From Ostrea edulis (taxonomy: Eukaryota), in assembly GCF_947568905.1 (NCBI RefSeq), contig NC_079165.1:21452001-21516000 (forward strand): a stretch of 64,000 bases of DNA. Direction: 5' to 3'. Below are positions 14,876 to 39,939 of this stretch, in pieces. Below the pieces are notes generated by a model. The model was given only the letters and a program-made list of their open reading frames with translations, ran no database searches and was not told where the DNA came from. Each line of letters begins with the position of its first letter. Positions within the stretch are counted from its first letter, which is position 1. The translations under genes were made by a program, and so were the position numbers.

Positions 14876-15360
14876 CACTGGTATTAAACTGATGATAGTA
14901 ACGATCGTTACTATCATCCCAAGATGGCGGAAGGAATTTCCGGTAAGACCACATTTACTTATTATATCGATTTGTATTGTTTATTTGCGAATGATATGTA
15001 GGTAAGAAATATCATACATTAGCAACAATTACGATCAGGTGTTATTTTATCTTTTATACGGCTCATATGAACAGAAAATTTGTCGTTGAAAAAACAGCGA
15101 GGATGATAGTAATGAAAGTAACGTTACTATCATCATCGCTGTTTTTTCAACGACGAATTTTCTGTTCATATGAGCCGTATAAAAGATAAAATAACACCTG
15201 ATCGTAATTGTTGCTAGCGTATGATATTTCTTACCTACATATCATTCGCAAATAAACAATACAAATAGATATAATAAGTAAACGTGGTCTTACCGGAATT
15301 TCCTTCCGCCATCTTGGGATGATAGTAACGATCGTTACTATCATCAGTTTAATACCAGTG
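14876..15360. mobile_element. Foldback (almost wholly palindromic) element with flanking 6-bp direct repeat ATTACA
   Basis: About 225-bp arms are near-perfect reverse complements; ends CACTGG...CCAGTG; ATTACA at 14870-14875 and 15361-15366. Confidence 0.85.
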
Positions 15361-18300
15361 ATTACAATTACAGTACCAATATAATTATCATACAGCTATA
15401 CTGTCCATTTGCATTAATAATGAACATGATGAATAATCGCTTTTGTGAATGGAAATATTAAATGAATGGCATTAAAACATTATTTGATTATATCTTATTA
15501 CATGTAGTACTCCGTTCTTTTACCATATCTACATCCTATGATGTAATAAGGTTTAATAAACTGTTTAATATCTAGACTTAAAGCTTCATCAGGGCCATAT
15601 ATCCTGTGCATCTGCCAGATTTCTTTTTTCAGCATCCATACGTGTTTTTTTTAATTTACTGAAATAAGAATTTGTAGGAAACAAACAGATTCAGAAGAAC
15701 CTTTGAAAAATTCGATACTGCTTTCTGCCTCACCCCACATTTACAAATCGGAACACATGTCACATTAGAGTAAAGTTTATTGACCAGCATGTATTTCAGA
15801 TTCTAGTTTCAATATTTCACATCCCTACTCCCCTCCCCATTCAAGAAAGCATTCTCTGCAAATCCTTGATGAAACCTGTATCTCTTTAATAATCTCAAGG
15901 GTGATACAGAACAGTGATACCTGTTTAATGCCCGTTCCACACTAAGCAGAATCTGTAAGTCTTGAGGTCGTCTCCATTGTATTTTAATTCTCTTCTCCCA
16001 TTATAATCATGCACATATGGTGCTATATATGAACTCAATCAAGCCACATGAACTGATGGGGGCAAGAGGTCCAAATAAGATTTTAAAAAGGGGATCATAA
16101 GAATGTTGTTACCAGACAGAATCAATTACCAGTGGCCAGATAGCTAACTTAATAGGACACTTGACTGAAGATCATCATTATAAGAGGGTTAGAGTTTGAG
16201 TCTTGGTCTTGTCAATACAGGACTTTCGAGATACGGATCCACTCTGACTTTTATCACACGTTGAACGTAATTGTAGGGCATGTCACTTCCGGATTACAAT
16301 AACAACAAAGTAAACAAACATGGAATATTTCAATTGCTATCAATTTCCTGCATTTAAATGCTATCTTTGAAAGAAAGGAATCACTACAACCATTTTATAG
16401 GAAAATACAATTGATTAAATTATGCGAGTCGGCGCGGGAAATAAATCTAGGGAATATCTTGAGGATATCGGTAAAACTTCACGCCTTGCATCCAATGGTA
16501 CGCGTCTAAATGCACCTTTTCCCTTCCATCTAATTTACACCCAGGTACTAAGCACCAATAATGACTTGGATCGTCATCGTGGGACTGCGCATAGCTCTTT
16601 ACGGACCGTCTGTTAGCGAAACACCATATGTATCGATATCAACTTTGCCCTACAATTGGTTATTATCACGTGACCGTGGTGTATAAACGTCAAATATAAT
16701 CGGTCGTTCCGGCATTTCCCGAAAGTTCCGTATTGCATTTTCTCTTTCCCCGGTACACAATTTGGACATGGTGCTGTGACCAGTAGAAATTCAGTCAGGC
16801 ATGCCTTCACACTAATCAAAGACAATTTTTCCTACAATTTTTTAAAACATTTAACTCTCCAAGATATATTTTGAAAATAAATATTGTTTTGAGTTTACAC
16901 CTAATTAGTTTTGATATCATTATTTAACACATATCAAATTGCATTAATAGTGAAAATGTTCAATATATATGTATAATCTGCAAGGAAATTGTGATCAGTG
17001 TTTCTTGTTAAATAATAATGGAAAAAAGATAGTAATTTATTTCCTACCTACTCTAATTTTGTCTTGGATGCTAGTAGAAACACAGTCATTATTTTAGGCC
17101 TTACTTGGGATTCAGGAGTACAGGGTTCAAATCTAGTTCCACAACACTGCCATAATCAACAAATAAAAAGTGGGGTTATATTTTTGATCTATTAAATCTT
17201 TAATTTTGCAAAAACTATTTGAGACAAAATATTTTTGTGAACAAAAATGGATTTCGAAAAATGTGAATAATTATCCCTTGCCAAGAAGTATCATTGCCTA
17301 GATGTCAAAGATCCGCCTCCATCAATCGTACAGCATCCAATTCCTATCTGATTTGGCATTTAGTTCAAGTACAAAAACATATATTACAATTCTGATTGAC
17401 CTACAGTTAAATAGCAATTCATATTCTAATTCTCTTGAAATTTCATTGCACCTCAAACCTATTTCTCTTATTCTCATTAATATTCATTCGCACGCCGCTC
17501 GAGTGTTACCCGTTTAGCCAAAATGGGTCAGATTCGGAGGCCATTTTGGCTCCCATGTTGTCAGTTTTCGTGGAAAAGTTCCAGGGACTTTTGACGAATA
17601 ATACACTGTGTTGTCACAGATAGAGAATAAGGAGATTTGAAATGAAATTGAACACCTCTAATTGTTTTAATTACAAATGTCATTTGTTTACATACAATAA
17701 TACATATGCAAAAATCCTACCGTGATTTTGCCCGACCCCTTGTCAAAAATCGGTCAGTGTTGGCACGAAGATATGACGCTGTCAATTTTTCTGCGGGTAA
17801 ACCTTGTCAACTTGTTATTACAACCACTTCGTTCTCCTTTTACAAAACTAAACAAAGAAAACATTACTTTAACGGAATCATTATGCTAAAATTGTGGAAT
17901 TATGAATATGTAAAAATGGTAATTATTTACCTGCTTCTTCATTAGCGGCCCGGAGCATTTTCCGCCATTTTGAATAATAATACACTACAATTAACTTCCG
18001 TAAATCGATATGAATTTTCTATGAAAGAGAAATCGTCATTAAAATGTCTCCAAAGATGAAGCACGTTTATGACAGAGTATTTTTATTTTTCAAGATCTTA
18101 AGGAAAAATACATCTTGGGATAATTTTTTAATCCATAATTCATATTCCGGAAATTGCCGAAGTATTATCGGCTACCTGATACCAAATGCAGCGGGAATAT
18201 TCAAATATCCCAAAGTGCCATAGATATATTAACACTTCACAGTAAGTTGTCCGCTATTTTGCGATGAAAAAATCTTATTTGCCTACGTTGGCCTTTGTCA

Positions 18301-18628: not shown

Positions 18629-18938
18629 GGACCCGACCGAGATTCGAACCCAGGCCCCCTGAATCTCTAGTCAAGAGCTCTACCAACTGAGCTAACTGGC
18701 CATCGGTTATTGAATCCGGCTGACGCTACACTCCTCCCTCCTTAAATATCTTCACACCTGAAGACATCAACCCGGGATCTTTTTTACCCTGGCAGGCATT
18801 TTCACCTGTCAGTTCCAGGGGCTGGTCTACGGTATCAAATGTAACAGGAAGGGAGAAAATGCAACGGACCAGACCGGGATTCGAACCCGGCCCCCCTGAA
18901 TATCTAGCCAGGTGCTCTACCAACTGAGCTATCTGGCC
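18629..18938 (-). repeat. Two tandem tRNA-derived units (18629-18701, 18866-18938) of a SINE-like repeat
   Basis: 73-nt cloverleaf-like sequences with A/B boxes and paired acceptor stem but aberrant 8-nt anticodon loop; shared 3' flank GTTGCATTTTCTCCCTTCCTGTTAC. Confidence 0.7.
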
Positions 18939-19103
18939 ACCGGCGATCGAACCCGGCCTACCACTACAGAACTAACACCTCAACTTTATGATAAAACGGG
19001 ATGGTTTCATCTTCTCCATCGACAACTTCCCATATTCATGTAGCAATATTCCATTATCACCTGCATATGTATAATATGAAATTCATTTTCAATTTAGACT
19101 GTA

Positions 19104-19459
19104 AGTAGTATAACGCGTCCCGATAGGGAGGTCAACTGAGTGCACTTTTTATGCAAATGAGGTCAAGTAAGGGCGTTTTTGATTGGTCAAGCGGTGTTGG
19201 GGTCAACGGAGTGCACTAGGACGGGGTCAACCCCAGCAGGGGTTGTAGAGCGGGTGAATAGACTGGCCTATGGCCGCTGGTCTATGATGCGGTACTTTCG
19301 CTTTGAGTTCCTGGAATGAGTTCCTGCTATTTTTCTGAAAATCGGTATAAAATCCAGTGAAATCCTGTGTATTAAATCTAAAAGAATAACAGTGTATTAA
19401 ATCTAAAAGAATAACACAAGGTTTTAAGTTGACATGTTTATTAAAGAACAATGGTACAA
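19104..19459 (+). repeat. Left terminal inverted repeat (356 bp)
   Basis: Reverse complement of 38844-39199; identical by eye except one mismatch at 19453/38850 near the inner end; contains 2x25-bp tandem repeat at 19367-19416. Confidence 0.96.
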
Positions 19460-19532: not shown

Positions 19533-20450
19533 TTACTTTCTGCTGAGTTTCTTCTTCTTTTTTGGCCGTTCTTCAGTAGGTGCGGGTGGATTCCACATCT
19601 CTAACGGTGTGTATTCTCTCTTCACAGGGGGTTTTGAGCCAGGTACGGGTCCAATCATCGCATCTATCTCCGCTTGTTCTTCTGGACACTCACTAATCCA
19701 GTGTCCTATTTTTCCGCATTTGAAGCAAGGATCCTTTTGTTTGGTTTTCTTGCTGGTCTGTTGAGAATCTGCCGACCACGATTTCTTACTGGTCTGCGGA
19801 TAATCTGTTTTCTGTGGGCAATCCGGCGACCAATGTCCTGTTTCTCCACACGTGTAGCACGGGTTAGCAGTGTAATCTGGAGTGTATTCCTTCCTAGGTT
19901 TTTTAGAAGTCAGGTCTTCCAGCTTCTTCAGTAGGATTGTGGTATGATTTCCAATCTCATTACTCAGCACATTAATGCGGTTAACGATCCCGTCTAGTGT
20001 CGTGGTAATGATGGCGAAATCGGTCCTGCTCATGGGGGAATCTTCTCCGCCGAAGGGGGGTTTATCGTATAAGCCCATCTCCAGTCCCGTAGCGTCCTGT
20101 GAATCGGGAAAATAGAAGCCTAATCCCGGGTCTGTCGGATTCTGGCTAGGGAGGTAATCCGAGGTCTGGGCCATCTTCACTTGTCGAGCAACGTGGTCTG
20201 AAGGCGTGAGATTGAAGCTCGTGGTCTGGTTCGAGGTCTGGGCCATCTTCTTCTCTTCTCTTCTTCTTTGAGCAACGTAGTCTGGAGACGTGAGCAAGAA
20301 GTTCGAGGTCTTCCCCAGTTCAGTCTTCTGATCGTCACTCTTAGCTTTCTTCAGTTCAATGTAGTCTTTCTGTGGCCCCATCTCCTTCTGTACCAGCTGA
20401 TCTATTTTCTTCTGAGCTTTGTCCACAAATTCTAGTTGTTTCTGAGCCAT
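19533..20450 (-). CDS. Maverick accessory protein with two CCHC zinc knuckles (Gag nucleocapsid-like)
   Basis: CYTCGETGHWSPDC and CFKCGKIGHWISEC; TATAAAA at 20503-20509; AATAAA within TIR (19437-19442); C-terminal KKKKK. Confidence 0.85.
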   Translation of the reverse strand: MAQKQLEFVDKAQKKIDQLVQKEMGPQKDYIELKKAKSDDQKTELGKTSNFLLTSPDYVAQRRREEKKMAQTSNQTTSFNLTPSDHVARQVKMAQTSDYLPSQNPTDPGLGFYFPDSQDATGLEMGLYDKPPFGGEDSPMSRTDFAIITTTLDGIVNRINVLSNEIGNHTTILLKKLEDLTSKKPRKEYTPDYTANPCYTCGETGHWSPDCPQKTDYPQTSKKSWSADSQQTSKKTKQKDPCFKCGKIGHWISECPEEQAEIDAMIGPVPGSKPPVKREYTPLEMWNPPAPTEERPKKKKKLSRK

Positions 20451-21312: not shown

Positions 21313-21392
21313 CAGCTGACGTACAGGTGCTTGATCACGTGGTGCAGGTGTTTGATCACGTGATGCATAACCTTTACCTATAAATACAGGTG
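21313..21392. promoter_or_regulatory. Divergent promoter with E-box cluster and TATA
   Basis: CAGCTG, 2x CACGTG, 3x CAGGTG; 21-bp tandem repeat 21324-21365; TATAAATA 21379-21386. Confidence 0.7.
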
Positions 21393-21416
21393 TTTTCTGA
21401 ACGTTCGTTATTTACT

Positions 21417-21749
21417 ATGGGGGGCAGTGCTACTACGAGAATAAATGGATATAGTTATGTACTACAATGTATGAACGTGGCCTTACATAATCCTCACATT
21501 CAAAATGCTCGTCAATTTGTACAACAGATGTCACCGGAGGTCAGAAATGTACATAGTTTTCAACGGATTGCTGATTCATTAGCGGAGAATACCAATACGG
21601 GACGTTTACTCATGATTTATTTGTATGCTGAGGAATTGAAACAGAATCTTCCAGACCAGATGAGTGACATTGATCGGATCTTACGCGATTGTCTACAAAA
21701 AGGATTCGTGGAACTGATTCGTATGAAAGGAATGGCTGCCCTGTTATAA
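21417..21749 (+). CDS. Mini Bcl-2-family (BAK-like) protein, 110 aa
   Basis: FQRIADSLAENTNTGRLLMIY resembles BAK FTKIASSLFESGINWGRVVAL (BH1); C-terminus resembles BH2 region; ATG 21417 follows TATA. Confidence 0.7.
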   Translation: MGGSATTRINGYSYVLQCMNVALHNPHIQNARQFVQQMSPEVRNVHSFQRIADSLAENTNTGRLLMIYLYAEELKQNLPDQMSDIDRILRDCLQKGFVELIRMKGMAALL

Positions 21750-21786
21750 AACAAGAACGTTTTAGAATTTTTTCATTTTGATCATC

Positions 21787-22140
21787 ATGGCTGAATTGAC
21801 CAACAACGTTCTTACCGCTGTATTACAGCATTTCGAGGACTACAAAGAATCGGTGAACAACGCTCGTAGCGCTGCATTACGGTGTATCAAGGACTGGAAA
21901 GAAAAACAGCCGTTGAGATATAAATTCGCCATGAAGTTGTTGATCTTTTGGGAATTTCCTATGACCTTATATGAATATTCCAGCGTTTGCAAGCATATAG
22001 CCGACAACCTGAACAGAGAGTCTGGATTGATCATGATTTATAACATGGACCAAGAATTTAGACGACGGGAACCTGAGAAGACTGGGGCGATTGTAGCGAT
22101 TACCGATCACTGGCTGGAAAAGGTGTATAAAAAAACCTAA
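21787..22140 (+). CDS. Helical paralogue 2 of tandem array (putative derived Bcl-2-like fold)
   Basis: EFPMTLYEY..HIADNL..GLIMIY..QEFRRREPE..AITDHWLEKVY shared with neighbours. Confidence 0.75.
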   Translation: MAELTNNVLTAVLQHFEDYKESVNNARSAALRCIKDWKEKQPLRYKFAMKLLIFWEFPMTLYEYSSVCKHIADNLNRESGLIMIYNMDQEFRRREPEKTGAIVAITDHWLEKVYKKT

Positions 22141-22168
22141 CCGTTTTCTTTTCCTTTATTCCTGGAGG

Positions 22169-22516
22169 ATGGCCAGCAGTGACAACATCGCAGAAAAAGC
22201 TCATAACCATGCATTAGAATGGGTGGAGAAAATGCAAGACGATACGGTGTTTCAAGCTGTTAAAAATTATCTGATAGCGGGGGTGTTTCCAATGACTCTG
22301 GACGAATATACAGATCTACGGAACCATGTGTACATCAATCTCTATAACGATGCGGGGTTGATGTTAATTTATGTCGCGGGGGAGGAATTCAAGAAACGCA
22401 TGCCTGAAAAAACCGCCGAGATTGAAAGTATCACCAAGGACTGGCTTCGAGAAGTATACATAAAGTGTGAAGAACTTAATTCATTTCATTTATTCCCGGA
22501 GGATGGCCAGCAGTGA
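22169..22516 (+). CDS. Helical paralogue 3 of tandem array
   Basis: VFPMTLDEY..GLMLIY..EEFKKRMPEK..SITKDWLREVY. Confidence 0.75.
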   Translation: MASSDNIAEKAHNHALEWVEKMQDDTVFQAVKNYLIAGVFPMTLDEYTDLRNHVYINLYNDAGLMLIYVAGEEFKKRMPEKTAEIESITKDWLREVYIKCEELNSFHLFPEDGQQ

Positions 22517-22808
22517 CCACATCACAGAGAAAGCGATAGTTTATGTATTGGATTATCTCACAGACATTCATTCTGGGCAGTTTGAATTTGTGTTACACTA
22601 TATGCGAGAAGAATTATTTCCCATCAGCTTAAAGGACTATCCATGTCTCTGTCAGTATTTGATCGAGAACCGGATCACCCCGCAAGCCTTAGTACTGATT
22701 CATTTAATGGGCCAGGAATTGAAACGAATTCGACCCACAGACAGAGCAGAAATCGAGAAAATCAGACTACGATGTCTTCGAGAGATGTACGTCAAGTTAA
22801 ACGTGTGA
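22503..22808 (+). CDS. Helical paralogue 4 of tandem array
   Basis: MASSDHITEKA start duplicates MASSDNIAEKA of paralogue 3 at DNA level; LFPISLKDY..ALVLIH..QELKRIRP..CLREMY. Confidence 0.75.
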   Translation: MASSDHITEKAIVYVLDYLTDIHSGQFEFVLHYMREELFPISLKDYPCLCQYLIENRITPQALVLIHLMGQELKRIRPTDRAEIEKIRLRCLREMYVKLNV

Positions 22809-22990
22809 CTTTTAATCTGGATCAAAATGAAGTGCATCTGTTACCCGAAGAAGACCGGACAAGTATCTGGATGACTGTAGCTGCTGATCGATATCGATTT
22901 CAACGCAGGATTCGAGAAATGGAAAAAATGTTGGACCCTATTTTAAAAAGACATGTGAATTGGTGTTGTGTGTGGGAGTTATGTATTTGA
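22772..22990 (+). CDS. PP1-binding eIF2alpha-phosphatase adaptor (GADD34 C-terminus / ASFV DP71L / HSV ICP34.5-like), 72 aa
   Basis: RVxF motif KRVTF followed by R..IW...AADRYRFQRRI; AATAAA at 23004-23009. Confidence 0.88.
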   Translation: MSSRDVRQVKRVTFNLDQNEVHLLPEEDRTSIWMTVAADRYRFQRRIREMEKMLDPILKRHVNWCCVWELCI

Positions 22991-23545
22991 AATATGTGAC
23001 ATGAATAAAATTGTTTACACGAAAGCTGTGTTTGGTTGAGTCTCTCAGAGAAGGGTTTATTTGTTGAGGAATCCAGAAAATCCTAAAGGTAGAGTGAAAA
23101 TCGAATCAATTAAGGTGTTTTCTATCGAATAGACCTTATGAGATGTTTTTAGGGATGTACATGGTCGAGAAATAAATTTTTAAAGAGGGGTGAAGAAACA
23201 TTGAACCTCGACTCGACCTCTTTAACCTCTGTTTCTTTGAAAACTATGCGACGTAGCAAAATAAAAATAAGTTTAACGCATTCGCCGTCTCAGAATCTAT
23301 CAGATTAAATCTACCTTGCACAGATATCGAATGTCTAGAAAAAGACAATGAGAAAAAACTCTCTACTCGAAAGCACAAATCCGCCATTTTGACGGCCACC
23401 ATCTTGGCTTCGTCTCCGAAGCGAGGGATGTTTTCGAGGAGGTCCGCGCTTTCCCGATATATACCGGCGCACTCGCCAGTTCGCTTCACTGGTGATCCAG
23501 CACAGTTATAGAAGATTTTTGAAGGATTTTAAAGAAGAAAGAAGA

Positions 23546-24337
23546 ATGGCTACAAGAAGAGACCCGCTCTACAATTTTCAGACCTTGCCTGGATTCCGGT
23601 ACCGGCTGGTAGTGGTGGCTGAGGAACGGGTAGGGGAGAATTGGGTCGTGCGTTCTGAGAACGACCTGAGCACCTTCTCCCCTTTCGACCAGAGTGGGGT
23701 CCGTGAGATCATCTGCCGGGTGCGGGCCGAGTATGAAGGGAGGGCACCCCGCCGCCGCACCGCTCGAATCTCCACGGGTACGAGACCGCGCCGACGGGCC
23801 CCACAGCCACCCTCACCACCACCACCTTACTCCCCGGCGACGCCTACAACACCACCACCAGCGATCCCATCGGCACCAGTGGAATACAGCCCGGTGCCGA
23901 TGAGCGACTCACCAGCGTCACCGGTGGAGTATTCACCGCGGTCACCGTCCCCCGCACCACCTCCCAGTCCAGCCCAGAGTCCGTCACTGCTGGTGGCAGA
24001 CACAGCATCACCACCGAGACCAGCAGCCCCTGCAAGACCCCCACCACCTACCATCCGGTTTGCAGGGAGGACTCCACCACCACCGAGACCAACCCACGCA
24101 CCGGTGGCAACTCATCCCCCGAGGAACCACCCTATGACTGTCCCTGGCTGGGCAGATAGGGCGGTTCCCATCTGGTTTAAGTGTCCTGTCTGCTGGCAAG
24201 ACAGGGTACACTCTGGAATTACGTGCAGGGGATGTGGGCAGCGCCCAGCTTGCTGCTCGTGCGTGGAAGAGTTACAGGAGCGGCGACACACCCGGGGACG
24301 GTGCCCGTTATGCCGGTTTACCGGAAGCAGGGAATGA
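23546..24337 (+). CDS. Pro-rich protein with C-terminal C4C4 RING finger (putative viral E3 ligase)
   Basis: CPVC-x10-CRGC-x5-CCSC-x13-CPLC; PPPY and YSP repeats; ATATATA at about 23457; AATAAA at 24469. Confidence 0.75.
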   Translation: MATRRDPLYNFQTLPGFRYRLVVVAEERVGENWVVRSENDLSTFSPFDQSGVREIICRVRAEYEGRAPRRRTARISTGTRPRRRAPQPPSPPPPYSPATPTTPPPAIPSAPVEYSPVPMSDSPASPVEYSPRSPSPAPPPSPAQSPSLLVADTASPPRPAAPARPPPPTIRFAGRTPPPPRPTHAPVATHPPRNHPMTVPGWADRAVPIWFKCPVCWQDRVHSGITCRGCGQRPACCSCVEELQERRHTRGRCPLCRFTGSRE

Positions 24338-26257: not shown

Positions 26258-27661
26258 TTAGTAATCGATGCTGACTTCTCGTTGTTTGTTGATTTCTAGC
26301 AGATTGTCGAACACGGCATACACCACACAGTTTAAGGTCCTGGCTACGTTGGCGGCAAATTGCACTTCCACTCTCAAGTTCCCCGTCTGTATGAGATGAA
26401 ATTTATCCGTCTGGACTTCTTGATCTTTCGTGAAATCCACACACCAGAGGGTGTAACCGTTTTTATACTCTTCCAGGGTAATGTCCGGAGCCCAGTCCTG
26501 GCCTAATTTTCCCAAGCCTTTGTACAGACTCAAATACGATCTCAGGTACTGATCGTCGGTGAAATTAGGTTCCAAAGGGCGGGTTTCCATCATTTCTCCA
26601 TTGATACTGATTTCTAATTTCTTGACTCTCTCATTTTGGAAATGAAAGGGGTTTCTGGTATTATCCCCATTAAAAGCCGCATTGTCCACAAAACCCAACA
26701 CGATCAGTTTAGGCATCTGTCCTTGAAACAGATGATCGGTGATTTTAGATTGGGTGCCACTAGGAATGGTGAAGGTTTTCACTTCCACTCGTCTCAATGG
26801 ATATTTCGCCGTTTGAGTACTCAGTTGCTGATTGATGAGATTAATGATACTCGGCACAGGTTTGACTTTCCTCACCCACAAGATCATACTTTGAATGGCC
26901 ACTTTCCCACTACTCCCGGCAGCGGTCATCATGTAGAACTGAGGTCGAGCGCGATTGAATCTGAGACGGACATCCAAGCCATTAGGGAGACATTTCTCTT
27001 GCTCAAACAAATCCAGATGTAATCGATCCATCAACACGATCTCCTTACTGTCTGTAATCTTCTCGTGACGTTTTCTCAACCCTACATTCTTGGAATCATC
27101 CGGATACTCGGGAGTCGGGATGACGGCCGCGATGTTGACTTTGTTAGACACTACTGCAAATTCCACAGGAGTTTGAGCCAGAGCTTCTAATTTGACCTCA
27201 TCCATATGTCCTGCCGTATCTTTTTCCCACAAGCTACAGGCTCTCATCTGGGTTTCCAGAGTCTTGGGTGCATAAGACAACAATTTCTCCAGATACGCTT
27301 TGTAGGGATAAGTATCCGTCCCCGGGGTAATGACTTTTCCATTGAGACTGACATCGATTTCACTGAACAAGGAATGGAGAATGTTATTCACGGGGGTGGA
27401 GGTCGAATTGCCTCCTGCGAGATTCGTTCCATTGGCTTTCGTGAATTTACATACCATCTGGAGATAAGTTTGGGATAAATCCAGATATTCATCTCCTTGT
27501 CCTTTGATTTCAAATTCAATCGGAGCCGTATCCGAGTTGAGGGTACTGGAAATGGGGTAATATTCCATCCATTTCGAATCTTCTAAAGTGACGTTGGTCG
27601 GGGGCACTTTAAACAGTTCTAAACTGCTGGTGCCACAAGCGCAAGATTCTCGGTGCATCAT
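26258..27661 (-). CDS. Major capsid protein (double jelly-roll), 467 aa
   Basis: [58 protein letters not shown] motifs of Polinton MCP. Confidence 0.95.
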
Positions 27662-30175: not shown

Positions 30176-30455
30176 GGTGAACTGATGAATCTGAAGAAGA
30201 TCGTTCCTGTTTTATACTCGGGCTCGCTAACGTCATTTGTGGACTAGGCATGACGTAGCCCACCAAAGAACTTAAGGTGACCATCCAAAAATCGCGATTG
30301 GGATCGCCTAAGGCTAACATGACGACCGAGGTGATAATGATGGTTAAACACAGGAATAATTGTGCAAAATACACAATTTCTGCTCGAGGGACTTTTTCAC
30401 CCAAGAAAGTCCACTGGTTGGTCATGGCTGAATGAGATCCGCTTGCGGAATCCAT
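30168..30455 (-). CDS. Small two-TM membrane protein
   Basis: IVYFAQLFLCLTIIITSVVMLAL and FWMVTLSSLVGYVMP hydrophobic segments. Confidence 0.7.
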   Translation of the reverse strand: MDSASGSHSAMTNQWTFLGEKVPRAEIVYFAQLFLCLTIIITSVVMLALGDPNRDFWMVTLSSLVGYVMPSPQMTLASPSIKQERSSSDSSVHHG

Positions 30456-31507
30456 GAATCAAAACTGGGAGGATATCCTTTCCAACGCACTTTGACTTCT
30501 GAAATGACTTTTTTTCCCACACGCCGCTTTTTATACCCTAAGATTTCTTCCACTTCATAGACATCATCGTCTTTAATCACTTGTTGTAATTCCTTCTCGT
30601 AAAACGTTCCTTCTAATTCTTCCCCGTGATCGTCTTGAATGCGATAGACGTTTCGTCCTGGCACTTTTCTAGAGATGGTAAACAGCTCTTTGGTCCAATT
30701 CGGTAAATATCCTTTTTCAAACGTACGTTTGGCTTTACTAATGCGTACACGATCCCCCACTTGCAAGCGACTCGTGGTATCGGCACTCTGTTTTCCATAC
30801 AAGGTTTTCCATACGGTCAAGACATTCTTGGCATTGACTTGAGCAGGAGCTCGCCGGATACTGCGATGATAGGTATGATTGTAACCATACACCAGATCCC
30901 CCAAGACATCGACATACCGTCGTGTTTTATGACGTGTAAAATACCGCCACATGCGTGCTTTCAGCGTGCGTTGAAAACGTTCCACAATACTGGCTTTGGT
31001 TTCGGCATTACGGGTCGTAAAGAAATGAATGGATTTGAAGGCTTGACGAAATTCTTTATTGGTAAATTCTTTTCCTTGATCGGACTGAATGCGGACGGGG
31101 CGACGTCCCTCTCGAAAAATCCCTCGTAAGCCTCGTATCATTTCTTTACCCGTTTTCTGTTTTAAAGGCACGACCCAGGCATATTTAGACAGCACGTCAA
31201 TGGCACATAATAAAAACGTATACCCATTATTGTCTTGTTTCAAGCTGGAGACATCGGCTAAATCTAATTGCCATTGTTCATCCATATCCGTCACTCGTGT
31301 TTGTCGTCGCTTGAATTTCCTCCGTATCGGTTTATGCAAGGTATAGGTATCTTGAGCTTTCACCCATTCTCGAATTTGAGACAGGGTAATCTTGTGTCCT
31401 AATTGACGCACTTGACGATACAACGCCTGGACTCCCCCATACCCTGTCTTGGGATCGTAATACAGTCGCTGTAAGATCTGTTCTGCTTTCATGGTAGATT
31501 TAACCAT
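30422..31507 (-). CDS. int: Retroviral-like (rve) integrase with C-terminal chromodomain
   Basis: WQLDLAD, IQSDQGKEF, KASIVERFQRTLK (DDE); YEVEEIL..VRWKGYPPSFDSWI. Confidence 0.97.
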   Translation of the reverse strand: MVKSTMKAEQILQRLYYDPKTGYGGVQALYRQVRQLGHKITLSQIREWVKAQDTYTLHKPIRRKFKRRQTRVTDMDEQWQLDLADVSSLKQDNNGYTFLLCAIDVLSKYAWVVPLKQKTGKEMIRGLRGIFREGRRPVRIQSDQGKEFTNKEFRQAFKSIHFFTTRNAETKASIVERFQRTLKARMWRYFTRHKTRRYVDVLGDLVYGYNHTYHRSIRRAPAQVNAKNVLTVWKTLYGKQSADTTSRLQVGDRVRISKAKRTFEKGYLPNWTKELFTISRKVPGRNVYRIQDDHGEELEGTFYEKELQQVIKDDDVYEVEEILGYKKRRVGKKVISEVKVRWKGYPPSFDSWIPQADLIQP

Positions 31508-34223: not shown

Positions 34224-34751
34224 TTAACAAATAAAAATACGTACAGCTTGCTCAACACTATGTCTACAAATAGGACATTGTTTCAGTCCCGTAGCACATA
34301 TAGCACAAGTACATAAATGACCACAAGGTAAAAAAGCAATTCTCAAGTCTCGTTCTAAACAAATGTGACATTTCTGGGTACACATTGGATTCCCTGCCGC
34401 GTCTAAGGGTAAGCCTTCCCAATCGCAACCACTGTCTTTAGCGCGGGCATAGGCATTGAAGGCTTGTCGTACCCATTGTTTACCCTTATTACACTTCAGG
34501 TAAGGACAGTGAGGATACCAATAAGCATGTTGTATCCAAGGATTGTCGACAGCTCCCCAATGGTGAAGTCCAAAGTTGCAATAAAAACAGCACGTGTTAT
34601 CCCCGTACCCTTTGTAAAAGTATCCCGCTTCTGCAATGGTAGGTAATAGGTTCTGCAAGTGTTCGGGAGCATTTTCAAACGACGTTACTCGATCTGACAG
34701 TAGAGCATAACGTGGTGTACCCGGGTTATGTAGTGATTCGTAGTCCGTCAT
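34224..34751 (-). CDS. iap: Inhibitor of apoptosis (single BIR + RING)
   Basis: RVTSF..AEAGYFY..CCFYC..W..DNPWIQHAYWYPHCPYL; CHIC..LPCGHLCTCAICA..CPICR. Confidence 0.93.
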   Translation of the reverse strand: MTDYESLHNPGTPRYALLSDRVTSFENAPEHLQNLLPTIAEAGYFYKGYGDNTCCFYCNFGLHHWGAVDNPWIQHAYWYPHCPYLKCNKGKQWVRQAFNAYARAKDSGCDWEGLPLDAAGNPMCTQKCHICLERDLRIAFLPCGHLCTCAICATGLKQCPICRHSVEQAVRIFIC

Positions 34752-34786: not shown

Positions 34787-37700
34787 TTAATACCCGTAAG
34801 GCAGCGTGTCATAATTATGAATACGTTGACGTTTATCATACACCATGCGGTATTTCTTCACCAGAGGAATGGTTCGCACATCATGTTGGCGGGTTCGTTG
34901 AATAAAGTGCGGATAGTTGACATGGACTTCTTCTTCTTCTCCTTTTAACATTTTTTCCAACGTATCGAGAGACACGACTCTAGAGGCACGATAATTGAGT
35001 GTCAATCCTTTGACTTTGCAGACAGATTTTTCCCCCTGGGTCTCGTATGCATAATTTTTGGGCCCGCCCGACATGTACTTGATGATACGATCTCCACCCA
35101 ATTCATCGGTCCAGCCGCCTAAACTGTTGATAATGGTCGGATTGAACTGGGTCTCGTCGTGCTGATAGATGATACTATCCGTGTCAAAGTATAAGACACG
35201 CTCTCCCAAAGGCTGTAACGTCTCGTACAAATGTAAACGAGCATGAGCTGTTGTAAAACACGCCAGCACCACGTTTCCAAAGGGACAGTCTTCTAAAAAT
35301 TCTTCTTTCTCCTGATAATTGATCAGCATCATATCACATTCGGGGCGTTCACGATTTTCTAAGAGTTCGATGCCTTTGACTTCTAAAGTGGCATCTTGTA
35401 ATTTCTGTTGTAATTCTTCTTCTTCCGTGAGATACAGGGATTTGGGTAATTGTAATCGTTTAGCAAATTTTCCCCACAAACAATTTAAAAAGAGTTTGGC
35501 AATGGTTCTTCGGACCGGATTTTTCTGGATGTCTGCCGGATTCATAGCAATGCCTTCTCGTTGCTGAATTTCCTCAATGTAATGTTGCTGGTGTTGGGCT
35601 GTTTGACAATCCTCGGGGAATCCGGAAGCTTCTTGTTTAATTTTCAAAAAGGTGTTGATATACGCTCGAAATAAGTGGTCACTGGTTTTCTCAAAATGCC
35701 AAACTTCGTAAATGCGGTCGAGACGATAGCCTAGATCTAATGCTTTGTGAAGTTCGGTGGTCACCCAGGTGCCCGTGAGACTGCGTTCAGAATCGGTGTG
35801 CTGGCACCGCTCGTCGGGTCCTAAGTTGCGCTGTTCCGCACAGGTGCGGCATAAGGGAAAGAGTAATTTACCCCCGGTCTTGTAAGGTAATACGGGGTGA
35901 TACAGCTCTCGGGGTGGGAGGACACGACAACGAATGAGCCCGAAATAGTCTCTGACATCGGTGAAATGGCTGGTGATGACTTGGGGATGTTGGACGGGAA
36001 ATGGCTTGTATTTCAACACGTACGGGTACAGGGAACAGACATCCACGTATCGCATGTCACCCTCCTCACAATACAGTCGTGTAGCATTGGTCCGGCCTCC
36101 GTACAAAGCGTCACGGGGATTCAAATGATCTTGTATATCGACTCCTTGTAAAAATTCCTGTAAGTCGGGATTGGTCTGGGTCTGACGATCAAACTCGTGT
36201 TCCCATATGCTCACGACTGTATAGCCTTGGTCTTCTAAAGCACTGGCTCGTTTTAAGGTGTCCAGGTAGAGGTCTTGATACGTATGCTGAACACGATGAG
36301 GATGCATGTCAGTCAACAGATTCGGGAAACAGGTGGGACAGCCGTGCCAGTAACAGCCATAGAATTCGTACACGATACGAGATTCCTCATCATACCCATC
36401 TACTGTATAGGGTCCAAGCGTGACTTCGCCCCCATTTCTAGCATGTCGTATGCAGTGATGTTGATGTTCTAACCAGGCGAGCCATCGGCAAGCTTTAGCT
36501 GAATATCGTCGTGCTGGCCGGTAGCCCATATTGGGAATGATGGCGATGGTATTTTCAACCATGAATCCTCGTCGGTAGGCTAAATTAGCCGTGCTGGCAA
36601 ACGTGATGGATTCTTGAAAGGGGTCTACTTCCACCAGATCAAACAGGGTGGATTTGAAATGGGCACAACAGCGGCGTAAAATATCCACGTCCGAGATGCA
36701 GTAAGCTAAGAATTCTTTCTGGAAATCAAAGACTTTGCCCTCTTGTTGATGGTACCAAGTATAGAAGGCTTCACGATTGGCGGTGGACATATCGTCAGGA
36801 TTGTAGAAATGAGCGGCCGGGTAAGGACCCACATACTGCTGGTTCTCTGTCGTGTTGAAAAAGTGCGGGAAATAGCCTTTTTTCAATTCCGTTAATCCGA
36901 AAGCAGAGGGCATCTTGGCAAGAGCAAAGGGTAGAAAGTTGTAAGAATCGATGAATCTCAACCCCAAGACTTGCATGGATAAGATTTTACTCCCGTTCAG
37001 GATGACGGTGGGTTTGATACACGCCGTGTGCACCAGGTAATTCAAAATAAACTGCCCATCGTATCCTTTGAAATTGTGGGCAATGATGGTGGCTTCATCG
37101 TGTTTGAGTTCCACATGGCCTTGCTCATCGGTCTCGCTCTGTAAGAGCCATTCCATAAACTGTTTTAACGTGTCGGGTCCTTGAAATAGGAAGCGGCGTT
37201 GTGATCCGAATCCTTCACAATGAGAACAGGGCTTGTCGATATCCACACTGTCGCAATGTTGACACACACGTTCTGCCACGCATAAATTGGGGATGTGAAT
37301 ACCGTTTTCCTGACTGCATTCGAAATCGTAATAAATGTATATTTTCAACTCCTCTTCTTCTTTTTCTTTCTTAGGTTTGGGTTTCGTCTGTACAAAGCAG
37401 TGATGAGGCATGGTGACGACTTTGTGACAGATGCGGCATTCGGTTTGACCCCCACACGCGTGGCGTTTTAATAATTGCTTGGACATCCATTTCTGACACT
37501 GGTTACACCGCCCCATTAAACTGCAGACCGTGGTCGTTGTATTACTGCTGTAAGGTTTCAAGTGGGTCTTGTAACAAGCTGCATTTCTGAAAAATCCCTT
37601 ACAATGAGGGCAATTCGTCTGAGTCCCGTCCGGGGTACAGGGGGTATCGGCTAAACAAAATGAGCATCGATGAGGACAGACGGTCCGATGATCTTCAATG

Positions 37701-38746
37701 TGACTGTAACCAACATCGCAATAATCGCAATAGTATCCGTTTTCCGTCACTCCAGGCATAGACACAATGGCATCGTAATGCTCGTTATCCAGCAGGATAT
37801 TCAAACAAGTCCCGTGCCCCGGTCCTTTGTAAATAGGTTCCAGTCGTAAACGAGTTGTATTCGTTTTGAATTGAAATATTTTCAATCGATACTGTGGGGC
37901 GAGCGCGTGCTGTAATTGCTCCCATTCACGCGGCCCACACGACTGGTTCATAACACACCCAGCTTGTTCCATCAAGGCTATCGCTTCTCGTTTCTGGTCG
38001 AGCGTTTTGAAATCCCCTTTTCTCATGCGTAACCATTTCGTTTCCCATGCCGGGTCGTTTGATTTCTGGCTGTGTAGACGTGCTACCACAATAGCCCGGG
38101 ACAAGCAGAGAGAATCCTCAGGATTTTGAATGCGAACGATCGCTCTCTTGGAGTTTTTGAATTTCTCCTTATCCACGTGTAGATGTTTTTTCTTAGTGCA
38201 CCCGCTGCCTTGTGGATATTTGACATGGAAAAAATCCATCTGCACTGCCCCGTCGGTGATTAGGAATTCCTTTTTAGATTGCTGGACGGATTCTATTTTG
38301 TTCAGAATTTTGTCCTCGTTGAGCTGATTGGACTGCGTAAATTCGTACCAAATAGCTGAATCCAGAGACGGGTGCCGAATATTTAAACGTAGATAATCAT
38401 TGGGATTGCACTGCATTTCCTGTTTCACATTTTTTAACATATCCCGGAAGAGCCGACGAATGAAGGCTGTATTTTCTTTCTCTGGAATAGGTTTGAAAGC
38501 AACATTGTAGACATTTTCCTTGACTTTAAATTTCCGTGATTGACGTCCTCGTTCCAGTTGAATTTTGTAATAATCCGAAATGAGTTTCTTTTTCCCCCCT
38601 CCCCGCTGTAAATACTGTAGTCGTCGTTGATTCTCTCTGCGGAGTTGTAATTCACGCTGCCGTTGTCTGTTCAGCTGATCATTCAAAAATCTCAATCGCT
38701 GTTCAATATAACTCCGTGGAAGTCCAGTAGGTAACTTGTCTGACAT
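34787..38746 (-). CDS. polB: Protein-primed family B DNA polymerase (N-terminal TP-like and OTU-like regions, Zn-rich region, Vsr-like insert)
   Basis: YDFEC, HNFKGYD, YVDVCSLYP, KLFLNCLWGKF, YFDTDS, GPKNYAY, KVKG; uninterrupted 1319-aa ORF; TATA at 38783-38795. Confidence 0.98.
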   Translation of the reverse strand: MSDKLPTGLPRSYIEQRLRFLNDQLNRQRQRELQLRRENQRRLQYLQRGGGKKKLISDYYKIQLERGRQSRKFKVKENVYNVAFKPIPEKENTAFIRRLFRDMLKNVKQEMQCNPNDYLRLNIRHPSLDSAIWYEFTQSNQLNEDKILNKIESVQQSKKEFLITDGAVQMDFFHVKYPQGSGCTKKKHLHVDKEKFKNSKRAIVRIQNPEDSLCLSRAIVVARLHSQKSNDPAWETKWLRMRKGDFKTLDQKREAIALMEQAGCVMNQSCGPREWEQLQHALAPQYRLKIFQFKTNTTRLRLEPIYKGPGHGTCLNILLDNEHYDAIVSMPGVTENGYYCDYCDVGYSHIEDHRTVCPHRCSFCLADTPCTPDGTQTNCPHCKGFFRNAACYKTHLKPYSSNTTTTVCSLMGRCNQCQKWMSKQLLKRHACGGQTECRICHKVVTMPHHCFVQTKPKPKKEKEEEELKIYIYYDFECSQENGIHIPNLCVAERVCQHCDSVDIDKPCSHCEGFGSQRRFLFQGPDTLKQFMEWLLQSETDEQGHVELKHDEATIIAHNFKGYDGQFILNYLVHTACIKPTVILNGSKILSMQVLGLRFIDSYNFLPFALAKMPSAFGLTELKKGYFPHFFNTTENQQYVGPYPAAHFYNPDDMSTANREAFYTWYHQQEGKVFDFQKEFLAYCISDVDILRRCCAHFKSTLFDLVEVDPFQESITFASTANLAYRRGFMVENTIAIIPNMGYRPARRYSAKACRWLAWLEHQHHCIRHARNGGEVTLGPYTVDGYDEESRIVYEFYGCYWHGCPTCFPNLLTDMHPHRVQHTYQDLYLDTLKRASALEDQGYTVVSIWEHEFDRQTQTNPDLQEFLQGVDIQDHLNPRDALYGGRTNATRLYCEEGDMRYVDVCSLYPYVLKYKPFPVQHPQVITSHFTDVRDYFGLIRCRVLPPRELYHPVLPYKTGGKLLFPLCRTCAEQRNLGPDERCQHTDSERSLTGTWVTTELHKALDLGYRLDRIYEVWHFEKTSDHLFRAYINTFLKIKQEASGFPEDCQTAQHQQHYIEEIQQREGIAMNPADIQKNPVRRTIAKLFLNCLWGKFAKRLQLPKSLYLTEEEELQQKLQDATLEVKGIELLENRERPECDMMLINYQEKEEFLEDCPFGNVVLACFTTAHARLHLYETLQPLGERVLYFDTDSIIYQHDETQFNPTIINSLGGWTDELGGDRIIKYMSGGPKNYAYETQGEKSVCKVKGLTLNYRASRVVSLDTLEKMLKGEEEEVHVNYPHFIQRTRQHDVRTIPLVKKYRMVYDKRQRIHNYDTLPYGY

Positions 38747-38843
38747 GATGTCGAAAGTGACACCCAATGCACCGCGCGCCGCTTTATATATATTACCTGT
38801 AGACAGCGCTGGGTAAAACTAGGGACCGTGCCAGCTCTGGGGA

Positions 38844-39199
38844 TTGTACTATTGTTCTTTAATAAACATGTCAACTTAAAACCTTGTGTTATTCTTTTAG
38901 ATTTAATACACTGTTATTCTTTTAGATTTAATACACAGGATTTCACTGGATTTTATACCGATTTTCAGAAAAATAGCAGGAACTCATTCCAGGAACTCAA
39001 AGCGAAAGTACCGCATCATAGACCAGCGGCCATAGGCCAGTCTATTCACCCGCTCTACAACCCCTGCTGGGGTTGACCCCGTCCTAGTGCACTCCGTTGA
39101 CCCCAACACCGCTTGACCAATCAAAAACGCCCTTACTTGACCTCATTTGCATAAAAAGTGCACTCAGTTGACCTCCCTATCGGGACGCGTTATACTACT
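38844..39199 (-). repeat. Right terminal inverted repeat (356 bp)
   Basis: Reverse complement of left TIR; followed by TSD ACTGTA. Confidence 0.96.
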
Positions 39200-39939
39200 A
39201 CTGTACATCTTTAACAAAAAACATTTTGTCTCTCTGGATAATTCATGTGTACCTGTTTCATTGAACAAATTATGTGAGGGCAACCTCATTTTAGAAATGC
39301 ATTTTTTATATAATTTTAGTATTAAATTTTCCAAATACAAGTTGTACAGAGTGTACTATATGTAAAACTTATACGGTACCAATTTTGATGCACCAGATGC
39401 GCATTTCGACAAATAATGTCTCTTCAGTGATGCTCAACCGAAATGTTTGAAATCCGAAATAACTATGAAGTTTTAGAGCTAAATATAGCCAAAAACAGCG
39501 TGCCAAAAAAGTGGAGCCAAATTCGTCCAAGGATAAGAGCTATGCATGAGGGAGATAATCCTTAATTTTGAAATGAATTTCTAAATTGTATGACAGCAAT
39601 TATATATACATCCGTATTTTCAAGCTAGTAACGAAGTACTATGCTACTGGGCTGTAGAGACCCTCGGGGACTAACAGTCCACCAGCAGAGGCCTCATAAA
39701 CAAATATTGTCTGCCAAGTGTTTGTAATGTAAATGTAACGTTCCTATATATTCACTTTGCATTTTGGATGACACCGCAAAAAAAAAAAAACAACAACAAC
39801 AAACAAACAAAAAAACCGAGGCCCCGTGTCACAGCAGGTGTGGCACGATAAAGATTCCTTGATCCTGCTCAAAGGCCGTAAACACCGAGCATAAACCTAA
39901 ATTTTGCAGCCCTTCAATGGCTATGGTAGTGGGTACATA

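Follow-up and report, generated by a model that had tools for sequence, protein, structure and literature searches.

An apparently intact Maverick/Polinton, an endogenous virus-like element, in an oyster genome carries a tandem array of four related genes for small helical proteins, for which a cut-down Bcl-2-like fold is suggested but not proven. In this element and in its relatives the array always ends in a DP71L/GADD34-like PP1-binding tail, and the element also encodes an IAP. The window, that is, the whole 64,000-nucleotide stretch of DNA analysed here (contig NC_079165.1, positions 21,452,001 to 21,516,000), contains the complete 20.1-kb element (19104-39199), and the host is Ostrea edulis or a close relative. 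All coordinates are those of the window. The main features of the element outside the array are the following:

19104-19459 (strand not assigned): left terminal inverted repeat, starting AGTAGT and preceded by the 6-bp target-site duplication ACTGTA (19098-19103)
19533-20450 (- strand): CCHC zinc-knuckle protein, near the array
26258-27661 (- strand): major-capsid-type protein ("F54H12.2-like")
30422-31507 (- strand): retroviral-type integrase with a chromodomain, a core Maverick gene
34224-34751 (- strand): IAP-like gene (BIR and C3HC4 RING)
34787-38767 (- strand): protein-primed family B polymerase
38844-39199 (strand not assigned): right terminal inverted repeat, ending ACTACT and followed by ACTGTA (39200-39205)

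The identity of the element rests on its ends and its core genes. The inverted repeats are 356 nt long and 100% complementary. Pfam searches identified the polymerase (PF03175, E 7e-57), the integrase (rve, E 1.3e-10; Chromo, E 3.5e-8) and an A32-like packaging ATPase (E 5.7e-7), whereas the adenovirus-type protease C5 was recovered just below its cutoff (E 2.5e-4, 21.2 bits against 21.3). The capsid-type protein is 98% identical to an Ostrea edulis protein of the same name, with hundreds of relatives in oysters. The GC content of the element is 45%, against 34-37% in the flanks. The perfect repeats, the intact target duplication and the open core genes suggest that the element is young. The IAP-like gene is supported by clear matches to BIR (E 1.7e-15, 57.7 bits against a cutoff of 22.9) and RING (E 9.6e-12).

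The array lies in the accessory region of the element and comprises the following features:

21379-21384 (+ strand): TATA-like box, 38 nt upstream of the A-type start codon
21417-21749 (+ strand): A-type member, 110 aa from its ATG, the conserved first gene of every array
21787-22140 (+ strand): B-type paralogue 2 (ORF2, B2), 117 aa
22146-22200 (+ strand): conserved 55-nt start block, copy 1, a pyrimidine-rich leader plus the first 32 nt of ORF3
22169-22516 (+ strand): B-type paralogue 3 (ORF3, B3), 115 aa
22480-22534 (+ strand): conserved 55-nt start block, copy 2, at the start of ORF4
22503-22808 (+ strand): B-type paralogue 4 (ORF4, B4), 101 aa, overlapping ORF3 by 14 nt and ending GTC AAG TTA AAC GTG TGA
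22772-22990 (+ strand): DP71L/PPP1R15 (GADD34)-like PP1-binding tail, 72 aa from its ATG, in the -1 frame relative to ORF4 and overlapping it by 37 nt, carrying KRVTF and W...AADRYRFQRRI
23004-23009 (+ strand): AATAAA polyadenylation signal (function inferred)

The four genes form one previously unnamed family. In BLASTP comparisons ORF2 and ORF3 are 38% identical (E 4e-19) and ORF3 and ORF4 are 36% identical (E 1e-19), and the motif given for these three ORFs in the preliminary description matches the invariant columns F57, P58, L61, Y64, N74, L81, I84, E90, P96, I102, I105, L110 and Y114. The preliminary description regarded the three ORFs as paralogues that echo a "mini-Bcl-2". We found that this echo is real homology: BLASTP of the upstream ORF gives E 2e-6 to ORF4 and 5e-4 to ORF2, and the alignment of the A-type profile against the B-type profile with hhalign gives 98.5% probability and E 2.7e-15 over 93 columns, corresponding to the full length. 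The array therefore has four members, one conserved A type and three fast-evolving B types. In the tree the genes at the first position form one clade (support 100/99), and ORF3 is sister to ORF2 (support 94/91). A profile search of all stop-to-stop ORFs found no further member anywhere in the 64-kb window.

The family is rare. A search of 1.84 billion representative proteins returned only 29 hits at E 1e-3 or better, and all convincing ones are small ORFs on short ENA assembly contigs, some of them from Tara samples. Three long hits (1247-3284 aa) are unrelated or odd-composition proteins and were set aside. A word-index protein search found only one 93% relative for the A type and nothing for B3. 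An element of Crassostrea virginica has an A-like ORF that is only a weak family match (E 4e-4), has no Pfam Bcl-2 hit and overlaps a 171-aa long-form tail ORF; it does not provide a bridge to canonical Bcl-2 proteins. A Maverick of Mercenaria, a more distant bivalve, has neither the family nor the tail.

Comparison with related loci (with designations such as L001) shows that the array varies in copy number, and the "accordion" of the preliminary description is a fair term for it. Related elements always start with one A type, followed by one, two or three B-type copies, with deletions, partial duplications and cassette swaps at the conserved start block. The preliminary description took a nearly identical block of 46 bp around the starts of ORF3 and ORF4 as a sign of duplication in situ. 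The block is 55 nt long at 89% identity, and is not a leftover of a recent duplication, because ORF3 and ORF4 are only 36% identical as proteins. It is a recombination junction: the relative L001 lacks ORF3 exactly between the two blocks, and two other genomic copies, L011 and L012, carry a third, partial copy of the block. In L011 and L012 the last B copy is a version only 38-40% identical to the ORF4 of the window, inside flanks that are 89-93% identical in DNA. L011 also has an A type that is only 47% identical beside a B3 that is 84% identical.

The two types differ in selective constraint. The dN/dS values are 0.14-0.26 for the A type, with 0.14 even at dS above 2, and 0.38-0.97 for the B types (0.38-0.66 for ORF2). 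Pooled synonymous to nonsynonymous counts are 16:12 for A and 20:57 for B (Fisher p 0.005), although the pairs are not independent. No pairwise dN/dS exceeds 1 with meaningful counts, and the 0 synonymous and 9 nonsynonymous differences between ORF2 and its counterpart in L012 are not significant on their own. The faster evolution of the B types could reflect relaxed constraint rather than an arms race.

The preliminary description did not mention the Maverick or the PP1-binding tail. In the window the tail has the RVxF motif (KRVTF) followed by the W...A.DR.RF..RI stretch (WMTVAADRYRFQRRI). It matches Pfam PF10488 at E 1.7e-5, with 25.1 bits just under the cutoff of 26.1, while its counterpart in L006 scores 31.2. 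Among PDB sequences it matches DP71L (9nb9_B, E 4.9e-5) and PPP1R15B (4v0x_B, E 1.1e-4). A tail HMM hits the end of every related array, the tail is under purifying selection (dN/dS 0.165), and in one relative (P0011/L002) it is fused in frame to the last B copy.

The preliminary description proposed that the proteins have a Bcl-2 fold and have lost the BH motifs. We obtained template-free AlphaFold models of the A type (pLDDT 86, pTM 0.80) and of B3 (pLDDT 79, pTM 0.71), both of which are five-helix bundles with the same plan; the two models share part of their input alignment, and are therefore not fully independent. Their best Foldseek matches in the PDB are almost all Bcl-2 family proteins, with TMq 0.45-0.61 and rmsd 4-5 A. 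For the A type, the nine best matches are the Orf virus Bcl-2 homologue ORFV125 (E 0.16-0.74, probability up to 0.99, TMq up to 0.58), and about two thirds of the top 50 belong to the Bcl-2 family, including BAK, MCL-1, BCL-XL (TMq 0.61), BAX, BOK, KSHV Bcl-2, vaccinia F1L and NRZ. For B3, every match with TMq at or above 0.45 is Bcl-2 family. The invariant TN.GR stretch of the A types (T59 and N60, with a GR just before helix 61-77) sits directly before the most hydrophobic and most confident helix, much as the NWGR of BH1 is likely to sit before helix 5.

However, no structural match is statistically significant: the best E-value is 0.16 for A and 3.6 for the Bcl-2 matches of B3, and a search of the viral structure library BFVD with the B3 model gave nothing better than TMq 0.44. 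The models have five helices, where a Bcl-2 fold has seven or eight (PMC3847314). The Pfam Bcl-2 match (PF00452) of the A type (E 0.0066, 17.4 bits) is below the cutoff of 31.4 and is limited to the A lineage of the window, occurring in 2 of 23 family members and in no B type. Searches of PDB sequences with the A type alone and with the B, whole-family and A profiles gave no significant hit, the only Bcl-2 protein being FPV039 at E 0.61 in an inconsistent register.

The reading we favour, although we consider it only about as likely as not, is that the four genes encode cut-down Bcl-2-fold proteins acting as host-cell modulators, as part of a cell-survival module composed of one A-type gene, one to three B-type genes and the tail, with the IAP encoded elsewhere in the element. 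Under this reading the A type holds a conserved host target, most plausibly in the mitochondrial death pathway, and the B types are diversifying binders of variable host stress or immune proteins, as the poxvirus Bcl-2-like families are; the role as innate-signalling inhibitors put forward in the preliminary description remains a hypothesis. The last B copy would work together with the PP1-recruiting tail, and the array would change by unequal recombination at the start block and by exchange of cassettes between elements. Mavericks/Polintons are widely suspected to be real viruses of animals, but no virion has been observed (PMC8097293) and their accessory genes are mostly blank. An IAP, a DP71L/GADD34-like translation rescuer and a variable array of probably Bcl-2-like proteins are kinds of survival gene known from large DNA viruses. 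They are what a virus needs when it must keep an infected cell alive and translating, and would not be needed by a transposon that only cuts and pastes.

A less likely alternative is that the domain is not Bcl-2-like in any meaningful sense, but is a new helical module serving as the N-terminal part of a viral PPP1R15-like phosphatase regulator, for localisation, capture of eIF2 or another substrate, or regulation. The upstream copies would then be free-standing duplicates, and the last copy would be joined to the tail by fusion, coupled translation or a -1 ribosomal frameshift. This is consistent with the position of the tail after the last B copy in every array, with the fusion in P0011/L002, and with the insignificance of the fold matches. 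In L001, L007-9 and L003 the tail lies in the -1 frame of the last B, and its frame has no ATG (L001) or none close upstream of the RVxF-type motif, even though the tail is under purifying selection. The window and L001 share the heptamer G_UUA_AAC, the slippery site of equine arteritis virus (PMC3835772), two codons before the B4 stop and inside 31 nt identical in both. African swine fever virus DP71L also exists as a 71-72 aa short form and as a long form with about 112 extra N-terminal residues (PMC5618007). On the other hand, in the window, L005/L006 and L010 the tail has its own ATG, so it can be made alone. The junction differs between lineages in frame (+1, -1, 0) and in sequence, which does not look like one conserved recoding signal, and the RNA following the heptamer is not more stable than shuffled sequence in the window or in L001 (z +1.1 and +0.7); a classical frameshift signal is not supported. 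Judging from the sequence only, we found no convincing donor/acceptor pair for splicing between B4 and the tail, and the purine at position -3 of the AG in the start block argues against a splice acceptor there. The A type is the most conserved member and is never next to the tail; moreover, this alternative does not exclude a Bcl-2-like fold. A stronger version, which we regard as unlikely, is that the B-type domain is a rapidly diversifying targeting module of a virus-encoded eIF2alpha phosphatase regulator, with the frameshift producing both the free domain and the domain-tail protein from one locus in some elements, including that of the window, and the array acting as a cassette system that retargets host PP1 as the host changes. 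This would represent programmed frameshifting in a DNA virus-like element of an animal, together with a new class of PP1 regulatory subunit.

It is also unlikely that the A type is a true anti-apoptotic Bcl-2 homologue binding BH3 helices of oyster Bax/Bak-type proteins in a groove, with the B types as diverged copies active against different BH3 ligands. The top structural matches (ORFV125, MCL-1, BCL-XL, F1L and KSHV Bcl-2) are BH3-binding proteins, and the sub-threshold Pfam hit, the TN.GR motif and the co-occurring IAP point in the same direction. Yet the proteins stop after five helices and would therefore probably lack the helices that carry BH2 and close the groove, there is no membrane anchor, the B types lack the TN.GR motif, and no sequence-level relation to any solved Bcl-2 protein was found. 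Most doubtful is the possibility that the ORFs encode small structural or replication-related proteins of the element, such as core, scaffold or DNA-binding proteins, or are decaying and without function. They are short, helical and unannotated, and B-type dN/dS reaches 0.97 in one pair. However, they lie in the variable accessory region rather than in the morphogenesis module, next to host-interaction genes, the family is intact in every one of more than ten diverged arrays, and the A type is under clear purifying selection. The absence of the module from the Mercenaria Maverick argues against a core virion role.

The poxvirus Bcl-2-like families (vaccinia N1, A52, B14, K7 and A46; also M11L, F1L and ORFV125) are likewise small all-helical viral proteins with little or no sequence similarity to cellular Bcl-2. 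There are several paralogues per genome, N1, A52 and B14 lack a membrane anchor, and A52 and B14 act on NF-kB rather than on apoptosis (PMC3847314). Those proteins have seven helices, and no significant sequence or structure score links them to the oyster family: there is no Pfam hit to any poxvirus family, F1L scores TMq 0.55 and E 2.8 in the PDB, and in the viral structure library the best is a Murmansk poxvirus apoptosis inhibitor at TMq 0.43 and E 3.3. The carrier here is a 20-kb integrating Maverick, and the array is coupled to a PP1-binding tail. African swine fever virus combines a Bcl-2 protein (A179L), a BIR protein (A224L) and a 70-residue PP1 recruiter (DP71L) in one genome (PMC5618007). 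A179L keeps all BH motifs and is a clear Bcl-2 family member, which the oyster proteins are not; the IAP of the Maverick has a RING, which A224L lacks, and its Bcl-2-like genes form a variable tandem array directly upstream of the tail. The tail resembles PPP1R15A/B (GADD34, CReP) and viral ICP34.5, but is only 68-72 residues long. Its N-terminal partner domain, where fused, is the new helical family, for which Pfam scans, without a direct comparison, show no relation to the N-terminal regions of cellular PPP1R15 proteins.

The element has the layout and ends of Mavericks/polintoviruses, and in the papers we could search, none that mentions Mavericks or Polintons reports Bcl-2-like, IAP or GADD34-like genes in them. 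BIR and BCL2-like motifs are carried by another invertebrate mobile element, the Burro giant LTR retrotransposons of planarians (PMC6431247), where they are domains within one huge polyprotein rather than separate small genes of a DNA virus-like element in a variable tandem array. The oyster array offers a natural example of expansion, loss and cassette exchange in a host whose apoptosis machinery is of practical interest for disease.

The array contains further elements whose function is inferred. Boxes similar to the TATA-like box of the A type lie at 21745 and 22126, 42-43 nt upstream of the B2 and B3 start codons, and may act as promoters. Apart from one AATAAA inside the A-type coding sequence at 21440, the signal at 23004-23009 is the only one between the A-type start and the end of the array. 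The CCHC zinc-knuckle gene (zf-CCHC, E 3.1e-15) on the opposite strand is found next to the array in L005 and L008.

The region 21390-22990 holds a run of short ORFs on the + strand, separated by gaps of 37 and 28 nt and then overlapping by 14 and 37 nt. From their ATG codons they are as follows:

21417-21749 (+), A, 110 aa
21787-22140 (+), B2, 117 aa
22169-22516 (+), B3, 115 aa
22503-22808 (+), B4, 101 aa
22772-22990 (+), a 72-aa ORF in the -1 frame of B4

The three ORFs that the preliminary description reported as diverged paralogues are B2-B4. They are plainly paralogous: B2 and B3 are 38% identical (E 4e-19), and B3 and B4 are 36% identical (E 1e-19). The shared motif noted in that description corresponds to the invariant columns of the alignment. 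The ORF that it called the mini-Bcl-2 is A, which matches B4 at E 2e-6 and B2 at E 5e-4. With relatives added, an A-type profile (8 sequences) aligns to a B-type profile (17 sequences) over 93 columns, at 98.5% probability and E 2.7e-15. There are therefore four paralogues of one family. A search with a family profile found no other copy in the 64-kb window.

A nearly identical DNA block of 46 bp around the starts of B3 and B4 had been taken as showing duplication in situ. We found that the block is 55 nt long at 89% identity (22146-22200 and 22480-22534), and covers a pyrimidine-rich leader and the first eleven codons of B3 and B4. The rest of B3 and B4 has diverged to 36% protein identity, so the block is not a remnant of a recent duplication. 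Instead, it behaves as a recombination site: a relative, the locus L001, goes straight from B2 to B4 with the junction inside the block, and two other genomic copies, the O. edulis loci L011 and L012, have a third, partial copy of the block in front of B3.

Positions 19104-39199 are a Maverick/Polinton. The element has perfect 356-nt terminal inverted repeats (19104-19459 and 38844-39199), the ends AGTAGT...ACTACT, which is the end motif described for vertebrate Mavericks (PMC8097293), and a 6-bp target duplication ACTGTA (19098-19103 and 39200-39205). Its GC content is 45% against 34-37% in the flanks. It encodes a protein-primed polymerase, an integrase with chromodomain and an A32-like ATPase, and gives an adenovirus-type protease hit at E 2.5e-4 (21.2 bits against a cutoff of 21.3). 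A capsid-type protein is 98% identical to an Ostrea edulis protein and has many relatives in Saccostrea, Crassostrea and Magallana. With its perfect repeats, target duplication and open core genes, the element looks like a very recent insertion. The array lies in the left accessory region, next to the following genes:

19533-20450 (-), a CCHC zinc-knuckle protein near the array, which is also the neighbour of the array in the related loci L005 and L008
20771-21277 (-), a 168-aa ORF of unknown function, conserved in L001 (dN/dS 0.37), with only a weak Viral_Rep hit (E 0.015)
23492-24337 (+), a downstream proline-rich ORF with a cysteine-rich, RING-like C-terminus and no Pfam hit, whose counterpart is an annotated 263-aa gene in the O. 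edulis copies

An exhaustive profile search of 1.84 billion representative proteins gave only 29 hits at E 1e-3 or better, of which three long ones are spurious. The rest are small ORFs on short ENA-held assembly contigs, some from Tara samples. None has a Pfam domain or a name, and the genes called in L011 and L012 do not include them. In every locus the genes form the same array, with one A type first and then B types, but the number of B copies varies.

Number of B copies after the A type in the window and in related loci (L numbers)
L004/L002: 1
L001, L005/L006, L011: 2
L003: at least 2 (contig ends)
Window, L012, L007-9: 3

In a maximum-likelihood tree the position-1 genes form one clade (support 100/99) with short branches, while the B types sit on long branches and B3 groups with B2 (94/91). 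Copies from O. edulis or close relatives are mosaics. L012 (positions 15221-16709 of the locus, from OX387709.1) is 89-93% identical to the window in DNA, but its last B is only 40% identical to B4. L011 (positions 15256-16607 of the locus, from OX387711.1) lacks B2 and has an A type only 47% identical beside a B3 that is 84% identical. In these two copies the last B is only 38-40% identical to B4 of the window, inside flanks that are otherwise 84-93% identical, indicating cassette swaps. The dN/dS is 0.14-0.26 for A and 0.38-0.97 for B types, and pooled synonymous:nonsynonymous counts are 16:12 against 20:57 (Fisher p 0.005, with the caveat that the pairs share sequences). The term "accordion" used in the preliminary description is thus fair, although the process includes loss, partial duplication and cassette exchange between elements, and not only duplication in place.

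Sequence evidence for a Bcl-2 fold is thin. The Pfam Bcl-2 model hits A at E 0.0066 (17.4 bits, cutoff 31.4), and only in the window lineage, in 2 of 23 members. Searches of PDB sequences with single sequences and three different profiles found no Bcl-2 protein at a meaningful score. Structure prediction, on the other hand, gives confident models for B3 (pLDDT 79, pTM 0.71 with 7 sequences) and for A (pLDDT 86, pTM 0.80 with 23 sequences). Both models have the same five helices, at about residues 2/11-22, 26-40, 45-57, 61-77 and 79-105/109.

Foldseek against the PDB found no match at E 1e-3 or better for either model, but the pattern of matches is consistent. For A, the nine best matches are Orf virus ORFV125 (E from 0.16, probability up to 0.99, TMq up to 0.58), and about two thirds of the top 50 are Bcl-2 family proteins from animals and viruses, with TMq up to 0.61. 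For B3, every match with TMq at or above 0.45 is Bcl-2 family. The CID domain, named in the preliminary description as an alternative, scores only TMq 0.40. Against membership, Bcl-2 folds have eight helices, or seven in M11L, F1L and N1 (PMC3847314), while the proteins described here are predicted to have five, and the rmsd values are 4-5 A. We therefore consider the fold probable, at somewhat better than even confidence, and membership in the family not established. The invariant TN.GR of A types sits just before the buried, most confident helix. This may be equivalent to the position of NWGR in Bcl-2 proteins, although the equivalence is inferred.

The preliminary description did not include the 72-aa ORF overlapping the end of B4, which is a DP71L/GADD34-type PP1-binding region. 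It has KRVTF and WMTVAADRYRFQRRI. Searched apart from B4, it matches the solved DP71L chain 9nb9_B at E 4.9e-5 and PPP1R15B at E 1.1e-4. It scores just under the Pfam cutoff here, and above it in the L006 counterpart. The tail is under purifying selection, with dN/dS of 0.165. Its synonymous divergence between the window (22793-22945) and L001 (1824-1976), dS about 0.96, is five to nine times that of the adjacent ORFs in the same pair of elements (0.10-0.20). The pair is therefore a recombinant mosaic.

A tail profile hits the end of every related array, but the junction with the last B varies between loci. The tail has its own ATG in the window, in L005/L006 and in another related locus, L010, where there is an ATGGCTGA stop/start overlap. 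In the relative P0011/L002 it is fused in frame to the last B. In L001 it has no ATG, and in L007-9 and L003 there is none close upstream of the RVxF-type motif; in these loci the tail is in the -1 frame. In the window and L001 the sequence G_UUA_AAC (22797-22803 in the window) lies two codons before the B4 stop, inside 31 nt identical in both, and a -1 slip there would read ...KRVTF. This heptamer is the equine arteritis virus slippery site (PMC3835772). However, no stable structure follows it, and the tail may be expressed from its own ATG, as a fusion or possibly by such a slip.

The element also has a BIR+RING IAP at 34224-34751 (-), between the polymerase and ATPase genes (BIR 1.7e-15, C3HC4 RING 9.6e-12). 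An IAP, a Bcl-2-like protein and a DP71L-type tail together are the combination described for African swine fever virus, where DP71L also occurs in a short form and an N-terminally extended form (PMC5618007). TATA-like boxes at 21379, 21745 and 22126 lie 38-43 nt upstream of the ATGs of A, B2 and B3. The only AATAAA after the start of the array, apart from one within the A coding sequence, follows the tail at 23004. This fits nested transcripts with a common 3' end, but these are inferred.

Viral Bcl-2-fold families and viral PP1 recruiters are well known. In the literature we could search, none of the papers that mention Mavericks or Polintons reports Bcl-2-like, IAP or GADD34-like genes in them, and the nearest precedent is the BIR and BCL2-like motifs inside the polyprotein of planarian Burro retroelements (PMC6431247). 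The new parts are the presence of Bcl-2-like proteins and PP1 recruiters in a Maverick, the array organisation and the coupling to the tail. With paralogy and array dynamics shown, the Bcl-2 fold probable and the function as yet untested, the interpretation in the preliminary description is partly supported, and the finding is best described as a new protein family forming the variable part of a host-survival module of an oyster Maverick.

A Crassostrea virginica element (L013, from CM130321.1) has, in the region 15721-16316 (-) of L013, a 171-aa long-form PP1-binding tail ORF with an acidic, serine-rich N-terminus. It overlaps a 153-aa ORF that is only a weak A-like remnant, keeping an A-like motif (SYQRIALSLAAGNLNAGRLLVIQFF). 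A Mercenaria element has neither the family nor the tail. The module therefore seems confined to oyster Mavericks, and is best preserved in the Ostrea lineage.

Just outside the left end of the element lies a 45-nt imperfect inverted pair (16122-16166 and 18906-18950, 73% complementary), possibly tRNA-derived, which may be a SINE-type repeat of the host. Positions 1-2000 of the window have a strongly skewed composition (GC skew +0.33, AT skew -0.52), unlike the rest of the window, and are probably a simple or satellite repeat.
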